From NCBI GenBank assembly GCA_043228905.1, contig JBHGNT010000001.1, positions 9,858,001-9,922,000 of the forward strand: a DNA stretch of 64,000 nucleotides, written 5' to 3'. Position 1 is the first letter of the stretch. Each line of letters opens with the position of its first letter. The DNA comes from Azolla caroliniana. Taxonomy: Eukaryota; Plantae; Polypodiophyta. This document shows, piece after piece, positions 8,859 to 19,491 of the stretch. The translations under genes were made by a program, and so were the position numbers. The notes below the pieces were generated by a model. That model searched no databases and was not told the origin of the DNA. It worked only from the letters and a program-made list of their open reading frames with translations.

Positions 8859-11433
8859 GGGAGCGTGTGTGGTGTGTGCGCGCCTCCGGAAAGAGAAAGC
8901 GCTTTTTCTTTCTTTCTTGCCGCTCCCCCCCCCCCCCCCCCCTTCCTCCCTTCCTTCCTTCCTCCTCCTCCACTAAAAAATATCTCCTCTTCTCAACGCA
9001 TCCACACACTTATTGCTTCTTCGTCCGGATTACCCACCCATCCTGCATTCACACTTGTGGCCTTCAGAAAATCGTCGCTCCCGGGTTTTAGAATTTCTCT
9101 AGATAAAGACATGGGCCCATATTAGATGATGGACATCGTGTTGATCTCTATAGCGATTACCCTCTGTACAGCGTAGGAAATAAGGGCTTCATAGGAGAAG
9201 AAAAAAACTTAACGCACGTAATAATATATAACATTCCAAAAAACAACTCTTTTGTCGGTCAGAGTTTGTTCGTGTTTCCATCAAAGACCTGTTGTTATCC
9301 TTCATGTGTGAGTCCACTAATACATTTTACCGCACCAGTCCATCCATCATTGTAAAGATATTTACCAACTCTCGTACGTACGCACACATGTAAAAGTTGT
9401 GTACATTTATTTAAACAACTATGAGAATCCCAAAAACCATGTTGCCCCTACTACAATAGTGCGCATTGGTATGGCAAAGTGAACCCTTTTTTAATGTCAT
9501 AAAATTAGATTATATGTAAACATTCAACACCACCATCAAACATTCTTGACATTCGTAATATATGTTACATATTCATCACCTACCAAGGTCTATGTTCAAT
9601 CAACAACTTATCAGTGATGTCATTGGTGTGCACAATTATCTTTTTTTTGCTATCAAATAAGTTAATAACCAATCTCTCTACCTTCAACTACCACTAAATC
9701 TAGGATAGGTGCTAGAAGAATGTACAAAATTGATCATGATTCCCTAATTTGATCATGACCAAGAGGTATATGAAAACTAATTCTTGTAGTTCCGAATGCT
9801 AGAATCCACTCGTGTGGCACTACAATAAAAAATTCCAGAACATTATGTTAGCATGTATATGACCGAGCACTAACAATATAGTACCCCATCCAAAGTTATC
9901 AAAAAGGGTGGATGAATTATATGTTGTTAAATTACCATGGAATCAAAGGCCATGCTTTGTTCTTGAAGAAGGCCAATTGATCAATCACTGCCTTATGGAC
10001 GCCCACCGTGAGTTAGTAGACATGACTAGTGCAAACTATGTAACGATCTTAGGATGCAACCCTCAAAGCGAGATAGGAGATGAGCAACGGGGTGTGAACA
10101 AAACAACAAAGCAAGAGGAATGTAAGACAAAGCTATGATTCAACTTCAAGATTGATGTTGATTTTGTTGAGATCAACTAGGATGAAGCCCCTTCTTTCCT
10201 CACCGTGCAAATCAAACTGCTAAACTAGAGTATGAGGTTGAACTTATGTTAACACTCCAATATTTTAGTGGTGGCCAAAATTGGCAACCTACCCAAAATT
10301 TTGTCAATACTATGGCTCTTAGAACAAACTTTAATCTTTGATAATCCTTATAAACTAGGTTTTAATTCAAGCATTGTAGCTTGGAACTAGTTGTTGAAAA
10401 AGGGGAATATGATGGTGGAGCATAAATGTCATACATCATCACTTGGGGGGTCTTGAATCCTAACTTCCTCATCATAAATCATTGCAACATTTTATACGTA
10501 GCATTGTAACAATTCAAATGACAATATATTGTAGTTTTGTACAACAAATAGTTATTGTCGTATTTCATGTGATAGTCAAGTGGTGAACATGCTTGCCATT
10601 GGTCAAGTGGTGAATGTGCTAGGTGGCAAGCATCTACATAGCTAGAAATATCATGTTTAGGGAAATTCCAATGCTGACAACATATTCAAATTTAACACAA
10701 CTCTTTGGCTATCACATTGGAAATTGTCATTGTACTATTATTCTTCGTATACATATATCAACAAAGAGTCCTTCCTTTTCTTAATTAACATTGTTTTTGG
10801 ATGTGGGGTGGGTTTATAGGTGTTGCAAATATTAAAAGAATTTGTTTACACTTTTTTTTTCGTAAGCTCATGCACGTTATTGCTTTGATCTTGAAAACTA
10901 GCTTCATGACATTGACATTTACCATTACGATAAGACCAACATGGCACAAGTCAAATTATGAAATTACCACCATGCATCCTTCCTTAGACTAGCACTTGTT
11001 TAGAAATGCCAAATTGAGACACAAACCATACAAGTTCACAATTATGGCCATATAATTCCATAATTCGAAACAGGTCCACAACAATAGGTATTGAATCCAT
11101 CGTTGAAAGTATTTGCAAGTTCGTACCAAGACGAAATCATGGCATTACCAAATGAGTTTGGTTCTCAATTAGTAAATTCCTCACATGCTCCCTTCTTCAC
11201 ACGAGAGTGGTGATAGGAAGTATTGTTTTTTTTCCGAATATGTCCTTGAAAGTCTTATCAATCTATCTAATTCAGCACTTCGCTTGTGCATTGGATGGAC
11301 ACCGGGACAATTTGGCGTCAGCATAACTCATTGTGTGTCCAGATCATCTAAGCAATCAACTAATTCTAGGCCTACTAGTACTAACTTGGTTTATTGGGAA
11401 TGTACACATACATACATACATACATACATACAT

Positions 11434-11547
11434 CGTGGTGTCTAACTACTACCAAATATTAAAGAGGCCAAGTGAGGGAATCGCGGAGAGGGACGGTGCA
11501 GGTCGCACCGCTGATGGCGCGTTCGATCTCCACCGTCCAAGATGGAT
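11434..11547 (+). repeat. Left TIR of the MULE
   Basis: Reverse complement of 17230-17345 apart from a few mismatches; the outer 8 bp are imperfect. Confidence 0.93.
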
Positions 11548-11579
11548 GTGGAATAGGCGCGAAAAAGCGCGCCACGTAA

Positions 11580-11905
11580 AAAGGGAGCCCGGCTCATACA
11601 AAATGGAGCCCGACTCATTAAAGAAGGGCTCCACTTTGTGAAAGGGAGCCCTTCTCATTCATGTTCAGGGAAGTATAAAAACCCATTCAGGCAAAATGGA
11701 GCCCGACTCATTAAAGAAGGGCTCCACTTTGTGAAAGGGAGCCCTTCTCATTCATGTTCAGGGAAGTATAAAAACCCATTCAGGCAAAATGGAGCCCGAC
11801 TCATTAAAGAAGGGCTCCCTTGGAGCCCGACTCATTAAAGAATGGCTCCATTTTGTCAAAAGGGAGCCCTTCTCATTCATGTTCAAGGAAGTATAAAAAC
11901 CCATT
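11580..11905 (+). repeat. Left subterminal repeats (GGAGCCCGACTC motif; 93 bp tandem unit)
   Basis: Motif at ~11583, 11605, 11698, 11791 and 11822. The 93 bp duplication is visible as the repeated 31-aa block in ORF 11638. Confidence 0.85.
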
Positions 11906-12121
11906 TTTTGTCATTTTTTGTCATTCGTGGGTTTGAGGGTTTAGGGTTTTTGAGCGAGGCGCACCACCTGTCTGCGATCACTCGTTGCAAACATCTCCGG
12001 TGAGGCACTGCGAGCACCTGCAGTCCAGAGGTAGGCATCATATTCCTTCTATTAGGTTTTGGTTTTTATTAGGTATCATATTCTTTCTATTAGGTTTAGG
12101 GTTGCTTCTAATAGGTACCAT

Positions 12122-12895
12122 AAATGTGTGTATGATTAAATACATGTATGTGTGTATGATTCAATACATTTCTGTGTGTGTATGATTGAATACATTTGTG
12201 TGTGTGATGGGTTTAGGGTTACATGTATGTGTGTATTTAAGATCTTCTTTGGGCTGTGAATGTGTGTGTTTGTTGTATGATTGAATACATTTATTTGGGA
12301 ATGTGTGTGTATACATGTGTATGATTGAATACATTTCTGTGTGTGTATGATTGAATACATGTATGTGTGTATGATTGAATACATTTGTGTGTGTGATGGT
12401 TGAATACATGTATGTGTGTATGATTGAATACATTTGTGTGTGTGATGGTTGAATACATGTATGTGTGTATTTAAGATCTTCTTTGGGCTGTGAATGTGTG
12501 TGTTTGTTGTATGATTGAATACATTTATTTGGGAATGTGTGTGTATACATGTGTATGATTGAATACATTTCTGTGTGTGTATGATTGAATACATTTGTGT
12601 GTGTGATGGTTGAATACATGTATGTGTGTATTTAAGATCTTCTTTGGGCTGTGAATGTGTGTGTTTGTTGTATGATGAATACATTTATTTGGGAATGTGT
12701 GTGTATACATGTGTATGATTGAATACATGTATTTGTGTATTTTAGATCTTCCATGGGCTGCGAATGTGTGTGCATGTGTATGATTGAATACATGTTTGTG
12801 TGTATTTAAGATCTTCTATAGGCTGTGATTTAATACATGTATGTGTGCATTTAAGATCTCCCATGGGCTGTGTATGATTGAATACATGTATGATT
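12122..12895. repeat. Higher-order satellite built on TGATTGAATACAT plus TG-rich linkers, inside the MULE
   Basis: Many copies of (TG)nTATGATTGAATACAT interleaved with TTAAGATCTTCTTTGGGCTGTGAATGTGTG blocks. Confidence 0.9.
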
Positions 12896-13095
12896 TTGAT
12901 TTTGCCAACATTTGAATGTCATTTAAATGCCAACATTTGAATGCTTGAATTTGCCCATGTGATTCATGCATTATTGGGCTCTTTTTTATGCCCACATTTG
13001 AATGTCAAATCTAAAATCTTGTATACATTCTTTGCGTTTTTTCTCCCTAAATAATAGTAATGTAATGAATGCCTTTCTAAAAATGTTTTGTACAG

Positions 13096-15017
13096 ATGGC
13101 TAGTCGGTCCAAGATCTTCATAGACTTTGATGCAGATTGGGGTGAAACAATACCCTATGAAGGGAGGTATGGCATGAATCATTTCTCTACTTTATATTGT
13201 GTATAAATAATAATGTTTGTGTGCTAACTTGAATGTTGGTTTAGGGTTTATGTAAGAAAGGGTGTTAGGTGCCCCAAATCCAATGATACGGAGGCTGAAA
13301 ACATCATTACTCAAGACTCGAGCATGGATACGAACCCCATGCATGACGTGGGTCCAGGTGTTGAAGATATCAAAGTAAATGGTGAGTTTATGTCCATTCT
13401 TATAATCATTATTGATGTAAGCATATTTTGGGTTTTTCTAATGCAAATGTGACACCATTGTTGTAGTGGACCCTATGTCCCTCTTCAAGTGTGGAAGAGA
13501 CTCAACAGGTATCAAATGTCGCACCTGTATTGTGGGAGATTCGTGTAGAAAAGAGGGGAGATGGTTTCGAAAAAAAGCGGACATGGAGGCCCATTTACAG
13601 AAGGCACATGGCATCCATGTAATACTGCCTCGGGGGCTAAAGATAGACGAAGAAGAGCAATCGACCTCCATGAGGAGTACAGCCACATCATTCTTCAGCG
13701 AATACGAAAGACAACGATCAATAAATCGTTTTTTGGATCCGGAGCTCAAGTATAATAGATCACGCCAATCACACATGAGGAAGTTGAGGACAAGAGCAAT
13801 AAAAATCTTCAAAGCCACTCCGGACTCACTTCGAACATGCAAGGAGGCTGATTTCATTGCTCAATTCGTTAGCCAACAAATGGCCAGGTATGACGAGGGA
13901 AAGGAGCATAGGATGGCAAAAGTGAGGTTGAAGATTGCGGATGCGTCTAAAGATTATGTAAGTATGGTTTATGATTTTGTGTGCATCTTATGTGAGTTTA
14001 AAACTTATGATTATGTGTGAATCTTATGTATGAATTGTAGTGTAAGAGTCATGGAATTCCCATACCAAAGGATGAGGCACATGTCGAGATCGATGGTGGT
14101 CAAGACCAACTGTCAGAATCGACAATGCAACAAGCAAGGAGGCCGAAAATCCAAATCCGCAGGAAAGAAGTGGACCCATGTAATTCGGAGTTCATTACAT
14201 CATCAGACACAGATGAGGATGCAGACATTGGGATTGTCTTTGTTGGTCCAGGGACAATCTCGAAAACATGGGATAACTCTGCAAGAAATAAGTTCACCAG
14301 GTATGTTGTTATGCTGGGGGCATGATATCAATAGTTAACATCATGTTTGTTTAGTAGTTACTAATCTAGCCTAATAAACAGGTATCAGGTGGCATGCCGA
14401 CGACTGGATGTAGCGGTCTTCTTGTCGGAGATACAATTATGTTCGTTGATCACAGTAGGGGAGATGGCATCCACATGGATGATAACCCTCTTCCTGAAAG
14501 ACGTACTCACTCGTGTTCCTGAAAGGGATTATGTCTTCATTCCAATATTGAACGCAGGGCATTGGGTGCTTTGGTTGAAGATGCGACAAACTCCTACGGG
14601 TCTCGATGCCAAGGTGAGGAGCCCAATTATATTTTGTGATCCACTAAATATTCATCCGACTACCAGGGTGCGGACATTGGGTGATTTGGCTATACGACAT
14701 ATCTCGAGTCGGACACATGACCATTGCATCATCAACAACGGGCAATTCCATGAATTGCGTATCCCAACCCAACCTAATTGGACCGATTGTGGGTATTACG
14801 TGATGCAAACAATTCGCATGTTGGTCGAGGAGTTGATTCAAGGATTTGAGTCCGATCAATTTGTAAGTATTTATGAGATTTGAATTTGAGCATTTGTTTT
14901 TGTTTTTGTTGATGGCATCTTCAATTGTAGGGTAAGGAGCAATGGTTTGGATTCGAAGACGTGGAGCTCCTTCGGAAAATCATGGCAAAATGGGCACGAA
15001 GGACTTTGGGCATATGA
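13096..15017 (+). CDS. Transposon-borne C2H2-like zinc finger + Ulp1-like (peptidase C48) protease, 6 coding exons, 508 aa
   Basis: Exons 13096-13166, 13245-13381, 13467-13957, 14041-14300, 14382-14862 and 14931-15017 total 1527 nt, all GT-AG, in frame, with no internal stop. Finger: CIVGDSCRKEGRWFRKKADMEAHLQKAH. Protease motifs: FIPILNAGHWVL, IIFCDPL, PTQPNWTDCGYYV, F..EDVELLRK. Confidence 0.85.
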
Positions 15018-15039
15018 CTACGTGGAGTCATTTTGCAAT

Positions 15040-15395
15040 GGTTGTATATGACTCAATGTAAATCATTTTGGTTGTATATGAATCTCATTTTGGTTGTAGA
15101 TGACTCAATGTAAATCATTTTGGTTGTATATGACTCAATGTAAATCATTTTGGTTGTATATGAATCTCATCTTGGTTGAATATGAATCAATTTTTGAATC
15201 TCATTTTGGTTGTATATGAATCTCATCTTGGTTGAATATGAATCAATTTTTGAATCTCATTTTGGTTGTATATGAATCTCATCTTGGTTGAATATGAATC
15301 AATTTTTGAATCGCATTTTGGTTGTATATGAATCTCATTTTGGTTGTGTATGAATCTCATTTTGGTTGTATATGAAAATCATTTTGGTTGTATAT
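15040..15395. repeat. ~22 bp-unit tandem array (CATTTTGGTTGTATATGAATCT) just after the ULP gene stop
   Basis: More than a dozen degenerate copies are visible. Confidence 0.9.
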
Positions 15396-15536
15396 TGGAA
15401 TTGTTTTGGGTGTCAAAAGAATAAGACTAATAGCTTATTGACAAGTAGTGAAGGCAATGGTTTTTGAGAAAGGCCAATAAAGAGTAAGTATATAGAAAGA
15501 GTGCTTCGGTCCTTACGTAAAGAATACATAGTAAGA

Positions 15537-15756
15537 CATAATGTCAATCCATTTCAAAGACATAATAAGACTCAATGTCAATCCAATTCAAAGACATAAT
15601 AAGACTCAATGTCATTCCATTTCAAAGACATAAATAAGATTCAATGTCAATCCATTTCAAAGACATAAATAAGACTCAATGTCAATCCATTTCAAAGACA
15701 TAAATAAGACTCAATGTCAATCCATTTCAAAGACATAATAAGACTCAATGTCAATC
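15537..15756. repeat. 33-34 bp tandem array (AATGTCAATCCATTTCAAAGACATAA[A]TAAGACTC), ~6.5 copies
   Basis: Head-to-tail near-identical units directly abut the truncated transposase. Confidence 0.9.
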
Positions 15757-15786
15757 TTATGACTAAGGTTAAAAATCGGGAGTGCC

Positions 15787-16875
15787 ATGACTAAGGTTGA
15801 TTGGGCTTTGATCTTGCATCATGCCTATGCACTCCGAGATCTTGGGAAAGTGGCACATGTTCAACCCTACCTGCATGGTGAACCAGGATCTCCCGCCATA
15901 CAACCATTTATCTTGATACTTCAAGATCAATGGATGTTGGAAATGTGTGAGCGGTTGACCCTAAACAACTCTTGGGCAATCGACTCGACATTTAAAACAA
16001 ACCAATTTGGGCTACCATTATATGCTGCAGTTGCCCCCAATGCCATGGGAATTGGGATCCCATTATGGTACATGCTTTGTAGTTCTGATAAGGGGTCAAA
16101 CCATGAGCAAGTGGCATTAGAAACTTGTTTGAGAGTCATATTCGCAAGGATGCCCACGGTGAGGCCAAATGCGATAGTGATCGATAAATGTTGGACGTCA
16201 TATAATGCCATAACTAATGTGGTTGCAACAGACCGTCAATCTTGGATTGTTGTAAATGGGCAACGGTCCCAAACACATTTGTGGTTTGACATGTGTGTGG
16301 AGGAAACTTTGGCCCAAGTTTGGTAGAATGTTCAACTATGGACATGTTGACACTACCAATATTGTGGAAAGACATTGGCAGTTTATCAAGTATACTGCCT
16401 TGAGGGGAAGAATAAACCGATCAATTACCGACCTTCTACATGTCTTAATCGGGGACAGTGAAACTGGCACTTGCATAGGAGGAACGGTAATAGAGTGGTA
16501 CAAGCAACGACAAGAAATATGTGAGAGTGGTCGGTTTGCACCTCGTGCGAATTGTAGGGATCAAAGGTCTCGACTTAAAGAAGCAGAGAGAATATTGGAA
16601 AGGTATGTCGAAAATAGACATCTCGCAAGAACTTATTGGCAACAACAATAGACATCTCGCAAGAACTTATTGGCAGCTCCCCAAACACTTCCAAATCCCA
16701 CTCCGGAAAATTACAAAGAGGTGCTAGTCGGGCTAGGAGGAGATTGCCATTGGTTGACCATGAGAAGGTTCGGTGTTTGCGTTGCAATGGCTTGACCTTG
16801 ACTTCAAGGGACTCAAATGTTACATGTTGTAAAAATTGTGGTTGCATCTTGCAATCATCCCGACATGAGCCATAA
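15787..16875 (+). pseudogene. MULE transposase remnant (5'-truncated, internally deleted, frameshifted)
   Basis: WAIDSTFKTNQFGLPL (first D) and RPNAIVIDK (second D) share a frame; after a frameshift near 16280 comes DTTNIVERHWQFIKY (E). The expected CxxH segment and SWIM finger are absent. A CxxC...CxxC tail lies in ORF 16636-16875, and there is a 33 bp-period duplication at ~16613-16675. Confidence 0.85.
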
Positions 16876-17039
16876 TCTTAATATGTATATTTCAATTTAG
16901 GGTTGTCAACATCTGACATTTTAATATTTTATGTAAGACTTGTTATTTGAACCTTTACGTTTTTTTGAGAAATTTTATGGTCAGTTTCATGGAAAATATT
17001 TGTTGTACACTTACAATTTTGTGGAGTTTTTGATGTTTG

Positions 17040-17215
17040 TTGCTACAGAGTCGGGCTCCTTCTTACTAATGTGATCTGACAGCGGGGCTCCTTCTGACAG
17101 AGTCGGGCTCCCTCTTGCATAGGCTGTTTGACAGCGGGGCTCCTTTTTGACAGAGTCGGGCTCCCTGTGGCAGAGTCGGGCTCCTTTTCGTAGAGTCGGG
17201 CTCCTTCTGACAGAC
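17040..17215 (-). repeat. Right subterminal repeats (GAGTCGGGCTCC, the inverse of the left motif)
   Basis: Copies at ~17048, 17100, 17153, 17173 and 17193, plus GCGGGGCTCC variants. Confidence 0.85.
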
Positions 17216-17229
17216 GTTGTCAGCTTTTT

Positions 17230-17345
17230 ATCCATCTTGGACGGTGGAGATCGAACGTGCCATCAGCGATGTGACCTGCACCGTCCCTCTCCGCGATTCC
17301 CTCACTTGCCCTCTTTAATATTTTTGGTAGCAGTTAGTCACGAGC
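17230..17345 (-). repeat. Right TIR of the MULE
   Basis: Reverse complement of 11434-11547. Confidence 0.93.
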
Positions 17346-17482
17346 TACATACATACATACATGCATGCATCCATCCACATAAACATGGGCATAGATTTGT
17401 AATTTGCAGGTTGCGTTCTGTTCTCTGTATAAATATCTGTAGCCGTCTTGATTTCTTGTCTGACGCTGACTGGGGCCTGGCT

Positions 17483-19491
17483 ATGGCTTCTTCTCCTTCT
17501 CCCAAGAACAGGGTTTCTGTCGGAGGTACGGATCGCGACGGCCACGTAGCTCATTTGAAGCAGAGGCCCCTGACATGGAATGCGGAGGAGGACGACGATC
17601 CGGACGAAGAGATCCCCCCTCTGTTCCTGGGATTCAACCAGGACAGCACCCGCCTGGCGTGCGGCACAGAAAGAGGCTTCCGGGTCTACGAGTTATGTGG
17701 AGGCCCCATCCGAGAGTATGCGAAATTTGAGAGCAGCCGAGGTAGAGGCGGAGGAGGGATTGGAAGAGTGGAGCTCATGTATGATCGCGGCTTCGCAGCC
17801 CTTGTCGGGGGAGGGACCCTCCCTGCATACCCTCCTCACAAGGTCATGATGTGGGACTTCAGCCAGGGCCGGTGCACGGGTGAGCTCTGCTTCAAGTCTC
17901 CTGTCCGCTCCGTCAAGCTGCGAATGGACAAACTGATCGTGCTTCTGGAACTCAAGGTCTTCGTGTATGACTTCGAAACTCTGGGCCTCCTCTTCTCGGC
18001 AGAAACCCTGCCGAATCCCAAGGGCCTCTGTGCTCTCTCAGCTGCTACTTCTTCCCCCTTTGTTTTTGCTTGCCCAGGAATGTGCAAGGGCGAGGTTCGA
18101 GTGGAGCAGCTTCGGCCACGGAAGCTCGAGAAGAAGATGACCAGGGATACCACCATGATTGCTGCACATGATTCACATCTTGCGTGCATTGCTCTCAGTG
18201 TCGACGGGCGCCTCCTTGCCACTGCGAGCAACAAGGGAACCCTTATTAGGATCTTTAGCACATTCGATGGCACTCATCTTCAAGAGGTATATGTTTCTTC
18301 CCTCTGTATCCCTGCAAGGCACGAAGTCTGTGTGGAAACTCTCAATGGGCTAGTGTGGTAGGAGATGGTCTCACCATTGATGTGAAGGCAAACTTTTTAT
18401 AAGTTATGTAACCAGAAAAGTAAAGCATTATTAGGGAGCCAAAACCTATGCCTGAAAGAGGGTAAGTTGAAATGCAAGAATTAAGTGTCTCATGTATAGT
18501 TTGTGGTATTGAGATGGAGCAAATGTGACCTTCAGGGTATTGATTGTCTATGATAGGGAAAGGAGCCATTTGGTCTATATCTTGAAGTGCAAGAAGCTGG
18601 AATATTAAGTCAACACTATTCCTTGAATGAAGTTGCAGAGTACTGTATCTGAAAATTTAGTGTACATTTGTGGTGCATGTTTGGTCAAACATATGGATAT
18701 GGTAAACATTTGGAACTCATAATAGAGGACTTGGAACCCTGTAGGCTAATTTGCTAAACCGGTTTGATATATCATCATGGACTGTCACCTATCGACACCT
18801 AGCAATTTTATTCAGGCACATACATGATGTTTCTATTGAAAGTAGATAAGACACTGAATTTGATCGGTTTCTTTTCCTTCCCAGCTTCGCCGAGGTGCCG
18901 AAAGGGCGGAAATCTACAGCATTGCTTTTTCTTGGAATGCATATTGGTTAGCTGTTTCGAGTGACAAGGGTACTGTCCATGTATTTGGTCTCCATTATGA
19001 GAACACTCAGACCAATGGCAAAAATGTAGCTGCAGCACTGATGAATGCTAATCCCGGATCCTCATTGTCATTTATAAAAGGTTAGTTATGGCATTTTATA
19101 TAGGTTTCTGTATTTTTTATGAATGCGTAACTAGATCAACATGACTAATCATCTTCATTTTTGTTTTTGCAGGTGTACTACCCAAATATTTTAGTTCAGA
19201 ATGGTCGTTTTCTCAGTTTAGGCTTCCTGAGGAAATCAAATCGATTGTAGCATTTGGAACTGAAAAGCATTGTCTTTATATTGTAGGTTCTGATGGCAGG
19301 TAAAATGCTGGTTTCCTTGTCTCGGTAATATTGATGCTTTGTGTGGTTGCCTGATTTTGGAGCTAAATCATGGCATGTGTGTATTTCCAATATGTAGCTT
19401 CTACAAGTGTGTCTTTGACCCTGTGAATGGCGGAGAGATGGTGCCGAAGGAGTACGTACGATTTCTGAAGCTTGGGAATGAGATACGATGA
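17483..19491 (+). CDS. ATG18: Autophagy-related protein 18 (PROPPIN/WIPI WD40), ATG18a-like
   Basis: Exons 17483-18286, 18885-19080, 19173-19299 and 19398-19491. Motifs: FNQDSTRLACGT, NPKGLCALS, IAAHDSHLAC, LATASNKGTLIRIF, the QE|LRRG phosphoinositide motif, SSDKGTVHVF, LPKYFSSEWSFSQF. Confidence 0.95.

Follow-up and report, generated by a model that had tools for sequence, protein, structure and literature searches.

Introduction

For twenty years, Ulp1 domains have been found in the Mutator elements of hosts as different as hydra and Arabidopsis, but no role has been demonstrated for them. They have been described in such elements of hydra, lancelet, Arabidopsis, maize, rice, and melon (PMC2836005), and also in the ULP expansions of rice (PMC12903978). 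At least 97 Mutator-like elements (MULEs) of Arabidopsis, named Kaonashi/KIU, contain intact C48 domains, and the KIUs are poorly expressed in this plant (PMC6117577). MULEs have been described as acquiring their Ulp1 domain by transduplication of host genes (PMC13317346, PMC6117577). According to a 2026 review (PMC13317346, citing Sasaki et al. 2022), some of the anti-silencing VANC genes of VANDAL elements also carry an Ulp1 domain, and these elements induce sequence-specific hypomethylation. VANC proteins are active in the absence of a protease domain (PMC5735166).

Here we analyzed a Mutator-like element in a 64,000-nucleotide stretch of DNA from the fern Azolla caroliniana (hereafter designated the window), in which an earlier note had pointed out a spliced gene for a zinc finger and a C48 domain next to a wrecked transposase. 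With a probability of roughly three in four, we regard 11434–17345 of the window as a non-autonomous, decaying copy of a two-gene Mutator-like element with terminal inverted repeats (TIRs), whose accessory gene encodes a protease that is most likely inactive in this copy, whereas the protein of intact copies would act as a nuclear deSUMOylating helper.

Results

Borders and insertion site of the element

The element occupies about 11434–17345, as delimited by its TIR borders and by an empty site in a related genome (L009). The ends of the left TIR (11434–11547, plus strand) were read in the sequence, and its arm at 11454–11547 is 96% complementary over 94 nt to the arm at 17230–17323 in the right TIR, which runs from 17230 to about 17345 and forms, together with the right subterminal array (17045–17214), the right terminal region at 17045–17345 (minus strand). 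The left subterminal array (11579–11849, plus strand), found by motif matches and tandem repeats, consists of five copies of the 12-nt motif GGAGCCCGACTC; this motif has ten matches in the window, where 0.04 would be expected by chance, and each end of the element holds five of them, in inverted orientation. Two unstranded satellite arrays separate the accessory gene from the transposase remnant (15039–15756), one with a 22/56-nt unit (15039–15395) and the other with a 35-nt unit (15526–15756), and both are present at 75–89% identity in a related copy, L001.

An (ACAT)n microsatellite borders the element on either side, and a target site duplication of 9–11 bp is not distinguishable from this repeat. 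In the related genome, the sequence matching 11120–11433 of the window is joined straight to that matching 17350–18365 via the microsatellite, and this empty site supports insertion of the element inside the (ACAT)n repeat. Since the microsatellite is uninterrupted there, the insertion is polymorphic or lineage-specific. The right end of the element is followed, at a distance of about 140 bp, by an ATG18a-like PROPPIN gene with its start codon at 17483; among named sequences, those of the ferns Ceratopteris and Adiantum match this gene best (69–70%). On the sequence map, the insertion is assigned to the promoter or 5′UTR of this host gene.

Structure and transcription of the accessory gene

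The earlier note had joined four open reading frame fragments into one gene of six exons and 508 residues with GT-AG introns, and this exon model was reproduced by reading of the sequence and three-frame translation. The six coding exons, all on the plus strand, comprise 1527 nt, that is, 508 codons followed by TGA, with no stops and with GT..AG at every intron. Exon 1 (13096–13166) begins with the ATG at 13096, which is confirmed by an in-frame TGA 11 codons upstream, and encodes a hydrophobic-acidic N-terminal motif. It is followed by exon 2 (13245–13381); exon 3 (13467–13957), which encodes a C2H2-like finger and then a helical region; exon 4 (14041–14300), a linker with a basic NLS-like run and with an acidic/Ser run leading into a hydrophobic SIM-like core; exon 5 (14382–14862), which contains the Peptidase_C48 domain; and exon 6 (14931–15017), which ends in the TGA stop.

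All five predicted coding junctions were found as joints in contigs of the public runs X13 and X1, including the joint 13381>13467 in an X13 contig and those on either side of exon 4, and a single 860-nt X13 contig spans exons 1, 2, and 3 and enters exon 4. The joint of intron 1 (13166>13245) was seen in an X13 contig and in two raw polyA RNA-seq reads of run X18, and that of intron 5 (14862>14931) in contigs and in two raw polyA RNA-seq reads of run X17, both runs being from the same species. The junctions proposed earlier were thus borne out, with introns 1 and 5 present in raw RNA reads. It is these reads that identify the spliced form as RNA, the library type of X13 and X1 not being on record; RNA reads are few in all, nine in two runs, and not assignable to one copy.

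Upstream of the coding exons, which the earlier model had placed exactly, it had missed a 5′UTR exon and its intron. Transcript contigs extend 117–146 nt as loose ends beyond 13094, and these ends match the window at about 11885–12030, delimiting a 5′UTR exon at 11885–12030 (plus strand; 5′ limit approximate) with a donor GT at 12031 and a 5′UTR intron of 1,065 nt at 12031–13095 (plus strand). Transcription of the accessory gene would start in the left terminal region, via this 5′UTR exon. A 24/49/234-nt satellite (12124–12892) lies wholly within the 5′UTR intron and is transcribed and then spliced out. Collectively, the accessory gene is spliced and transcribed at the family level.

Probable finger, helical region, and linker

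The finger ligands in exon 3 are Cys at 13526 and 13544 and His at 13592 and 13607 (C20, C26, H42, and H47 of the exon), with a spacing of C-x5-C-x15-H-x4-H that is non-canonical for C2H2 and BED fingers. In alignments, these four residues are kept in relatives down to 24–28% identity, whereas other Cys residues vary. The tree fern Gymnosphaera andersonii (L005, run SRR33327504) shares both the ligands and the finger-then-C48 order, on a short contig with no transposase on it.

In Pfam searches, which were run, as was the folding, on individual exons, exons 1, 2, 4, and 6 gave no match, and the best matches of exon 3 (Rua1_C and Zap1_zf1) fell under threshold. A profile of exon 3 gave no match to PDB sequences at E up to 10. 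An HMMER search with exon 3 over 1.84 billion representatives returned only 55 proteins, all of them short open reading frame fragments on metagenome or read-assembly contigs. To judge from these searches, the finger-plus-helical N-terminal module looks undescribed.

The AF2 model of exon 3 (mean pLDDT 83.8) contained a β-hairpin, a His-bearing helix, a disordered acidic stretch, and a long helical hairpin; the β-hairpin (residues 6–20) and the helix with both His residues (36–47) were predicted at pLDDT 80–92. Foldseek and VIA-align matched this model to generic helical hairpins only, over residues 73–163, with the finger scarcely covered, and the only leads from the Atlas shape and feature searches, to zf-C2H2 and zf-BED, were weak (TM about 0.3, score up to 0.84). 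Thus, the zinc finger proposed in the earlier note has conserved ligands, whereas a profile match was lacking and the fold leads were weak. The model and the alignments suggest that the N-terminal part of exon 3 is likely a C2H2-like finger. In the linker, exon 4 is just 23–30% identical in the relatives L006 and L007, yet the RRPK-type basic run and the acidic/Ser-then-hydrophobic motif are both kept, which fits a putative NLS and a putative SUMO-interacting motif, respectively.

Peptidase_C48 domain

Exon 5 matched Pfam Peptidase_C48 at an E value of 7.9e-8 (32.8 bits; cut-off, 20.7), in accordance with the C48 domain recognized earlier, and the C48 exons of relatives scored 41–44 bits against the same cut-off of 20.7. 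The catalytic set is present in the window as His (14560–62), Asp (14638–40), Gln (14770–72), and Cys (14788–90), all four being fixed, or almost so, throughout the family alignment. The family profile aligned with yeast Ulp1 (1EUV) at an E value of 4.9e-7 over about 160 residues, with the four catalytic residues in register.

Transposase remnants, divergence, and selection in the family

The MULE transposase remnants (15769–16872, plus strand) lie in two reading frames and were delimited by Pfam and by tblastn with the transposase of L006; the Pfam MULE profile (PF10551) matched at an E value of 2.1e-9 (38.1 bits; cut-off, 27.6). The window keeps residues 372–547, 613–724 (in the other frame), and 902–975 of the 975-residue L006 transposase. 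These three fragments agree with the description of a wrecked transposase given earlier, and the window transposase is confirmed to be dead. At 16613–16675, a 34-bp tandem duplication, with an exact 29-nt stretch repeated at 34-bp spacing, shifts the frame of the remnant. In L006, the accessory gene is followed, in the same gene order, by an intact, intronless MULE transposase of 975 residues, and an Ulp1-domain gene separate from the transposase is found inside the MULE in the window copy, L001, L006, and L007.

The transposase cores of the window and L006 are 81–88% identical in amino acids and 84% in DNA, as against 43–47% and 66–69%, respectively, for the accessory gene; the N-terminal part of the transposase has also diverged (53%). 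Either the accessory gene evolves much faster than the transposase, or the two halves could differ in history by inter-subfamily recombination. A 12–13-nt motif is likewise specific to the subfamily, being GGAGCCCGACTC in the window and L001 and CACCTAACCCGGG in L006. Arrays of the motif occur in both subterminal regions and, in copies retaining that region, just 5′ of the transposase gene (window, 11579–11849 and 17045–17214; L001, 8256–8463; L006, 553–708 and 4088–4244). They are candidate protein-binding arrays.

A comparison of the window with L001 by the Nei–Gojobori method, in which exons were aligned one at a time and the counts then summed, gave dS 0.219, dN 0.073, and dN/dS 0.33; the finger exon was the most constrained part, with dN/dS of about 0.2. 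These ratios indicate that the finger-plus-Ulp1 gene is under purifying selection as a family.

The same ratio bears on the origin of the accessory gene, which might be a fragment of a host ULP gene, captured as a Pack-MULE-style transduplicate and without function for the element in all of its copies. Such a history would suit the transduplicated Ulp1 domains of the literature (PMC13317346, PMC6117577) and the weak expression of the KIUs in Arabidopsis (PMC6117577). Against it stand, besides dN/dS of 0.33, the (near) invariance of the four catalytic residues across subfamilies, the splicing and polyadenylation of the gene, and the presence of the finger-then-C48 arrangement beside a MULE transposase in diverged subfamilies and in the same order in a tree fern. 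We therefore consider a functionless captured fragment quite improbable, and a gene that serves the element, as in our main reading, is preferred.

Core deletion in the window copy

The earlier note had taken the gene of the window to be intact, and this is contradicted by two changes in exon 5. L001, which is 91% identical, aligns to the window at 13084–14494 and again at 14498–15014, with about 96 extra nucleotides in between. The 32-residue segment encoded there is present in 10 of 11 aligned relatives, down to 50% identity, and the exception, P0083, is the same deleted copy. An insertion in L001 is ruled out by this distribution, and the window carries a derived in-frame deletion of 96 bp, that is, 32 residues of the C48 core, at 14494–14498 (plus strand). 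The missing residues align with the core segment of Ulp1 (1EUV) that holds the FNSFFY strand. The structural cost of the deletion is judged from this profile alignment, since the full C48 exon of L001 was modeled poorly by AF2 (pLDDT 47). The second change is a private Gly-to-Trp substitution in the QPNGxDCG active-site loop (14779–14781, plus strand), a position that is Gly or Cys in all relatives; at 14779 the contigs read G and the window T. Thus, the C48 core is incomplete in the window copy, whereas it is full in the relatives, and the core deletion together with the loop Trp makes the protease of the window copy, by sequence, most likely inactive.

All transcript contigs leave the window sequence at 14494/14497 and carry on as the undeleted form, and no read or contig of the public runs examined bridges 14494/14498 in the deleted form. 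Since all transcripts are of the undeleted Gly form, expression holds for the family and is unproven for the window copy. Two metagenome open reading frames, P0008 and P0013, each run as a single frame from the finger exon directly into late C48 sequence, from which internal deletion derivatives of the accessory gene appear to be common.

It may be asked whether the deleted copy works without catalysis, for example, as a finger-and-helical binder of DNA or chromatin, a regulator, a dominant-negative form, or a protease-independent anti-silencer. It keeps an open frame of 508 codons, constraint is strongest in the finger exon, and VANC proteins, too, need no protease domain (PMC5735166). Moreover, a contig from another sample (L010/P0083) is 98.5–99% identical to the window and has the same deletion, the same truncated transposase, and also an open frame. 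However, L010 may be the same locus as the window copy, seen in another plant, a young copy is expected to have an open frame by chance, and the transcripts are undeleted, as described above. A non-catalytic role of this copy is hence unlikely, and we retain the interpretation of the window copy as a decaying one.

The open frame next to a dead transposase had also been read as a sign of selection or of a very recent deletion. As the window copy is not an intact protease gene, its open frame is no evidence of selection on this locus. The same open frame, together with the position of the element beside a host gene promoter, might be taken to mean that the gene has been exapted, that is, domesticated as a zinc finger–ULP gene serving the plant. 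This explanation was rejected as extremely improbable, since the gene lies inside recognizable TIRs, is absent at the orthologous site of a related genome (L009), is one copy among many of a multi-copy family, and has lost part of its catalytic core.

Discussion

Collectively, the observations are best accommodated by the two-gene element proposed in the Introduction. Complete members would consist of an upstream multi-exon accessory gene and an intronless transposase gene of 975 residues in the same orientation, and the accessory protein would comprise, in order, the hydrophobic-acidic motif, the C2H2-like finger, the helical region, the NLS-like run, the acidic SIM-like motif, and the Ulp1/C48 domain. 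Presumably, the protein of intact copies enters the nucleus, where the finger and helical module may bring it to chromatin or DNA, and the protease may strip SUMO or a related modifier from proteins located at copies of the element. By analogy with what has been proposed for KIU and for the VANC-Ulp1 proteins of eudicot VANDAL elements, removal of SUMO would favor expression or transposition of the element. A bolder version holds that fern TIR-MULEs evolved a DNA-targeted Ulp1 independently of the eudicot VANC and KIU proteins, with the finger module reading the subfamily motif arrays and the protease stripping SUMO from silencing or repair factors, so that sequence-specific anti-silencing would have arisen convergently; we regard this as speculative and rather doubtful.

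The fern family offers a compact, expressed, and constrained version of a transposon Ulp1 gene, with a finger, a putative NLS, and a SIM-like motif, and its autonomous relatives make it usable as a test case for the question of whether transposon Ulp1 proteins act as targeted deSUMOylases. The window locus is unsuited to that test and is of value, instead, as a non-autonomous insertion, dated and polymorphic, that lies in the promoter region of an ATG18a-like gene. It also calls for caution, since a core deletion can go unnoticed in an open frame that keeps every catalytic residue.

Comparison with known systems

The fern element resembles the Kaonashi (KI)/KIU elements of Arabidopsis and other eudicots (Hoen et al. 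2006, cited in PMC6117577 and PMC13317346) in having a separate accessory gene within a Mutator-like element, a complete C48 catalytic set, and multiple copies. In contrast to KI and VANDAL elements, which are non-TIR elements of eudicots, it resides in a fern and has TIRs of about 100 nt, and, unlike KIU, its accessory protein has an N-terminal part composed of a C2H2-like finger and a helical region with no Pfam match. As with VANC of VANDAL elements (PMC5735166, PMC10398659), the accessory gene adjoins the transposase. It also diverges more than the transposase core, as in the contrast of VANA and VANC (PMC5735166), a pattern that module exchange could equally explain, given that the transposase is diverged in its N-terminal part as well. 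Arrays of short subfamily-specific motifs in non-coding DNA are a further feature shared with VANDAL elements. The VANC-type domains DUF1985 and DUF287 gave no Pfam match at E up to 1 in any exon of the window gene or in 16 relatives.

The C48 domain is tied to a cut-and-paste DNA transposon, as in other Mutator and Ginger transposons (hydra, lancelet, maize, rice, and melon CUMULE; PMC2836005, PMC12903978). Several of these elements fuse Ulp1 to the transposase, whereas in the fern element it is encoded apart from the transposase, by a spliced gene that also supplies a finger. Compared with yeast Ulp1/SENP (1EUV), the catalytic residues are in register, but the sequences share very little identity, another residue occupies the position of the first tunnel Trp in the profile alignment, and the window copy is without a core segment.

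The earlier note had offered the architecture as apparently undescribed. This appears to apply to the N-terminal module, for which no match was found, and not to MULE Ulp1 genes as such, which have long been known from Kaonashi/KIU. The anti-silencing mechanism, too, already has a published counterpart in VANC-Ulp1, according to the 2026 review, and what looks new is confined to the finger-plus-helical N-terminal module and the fern host.
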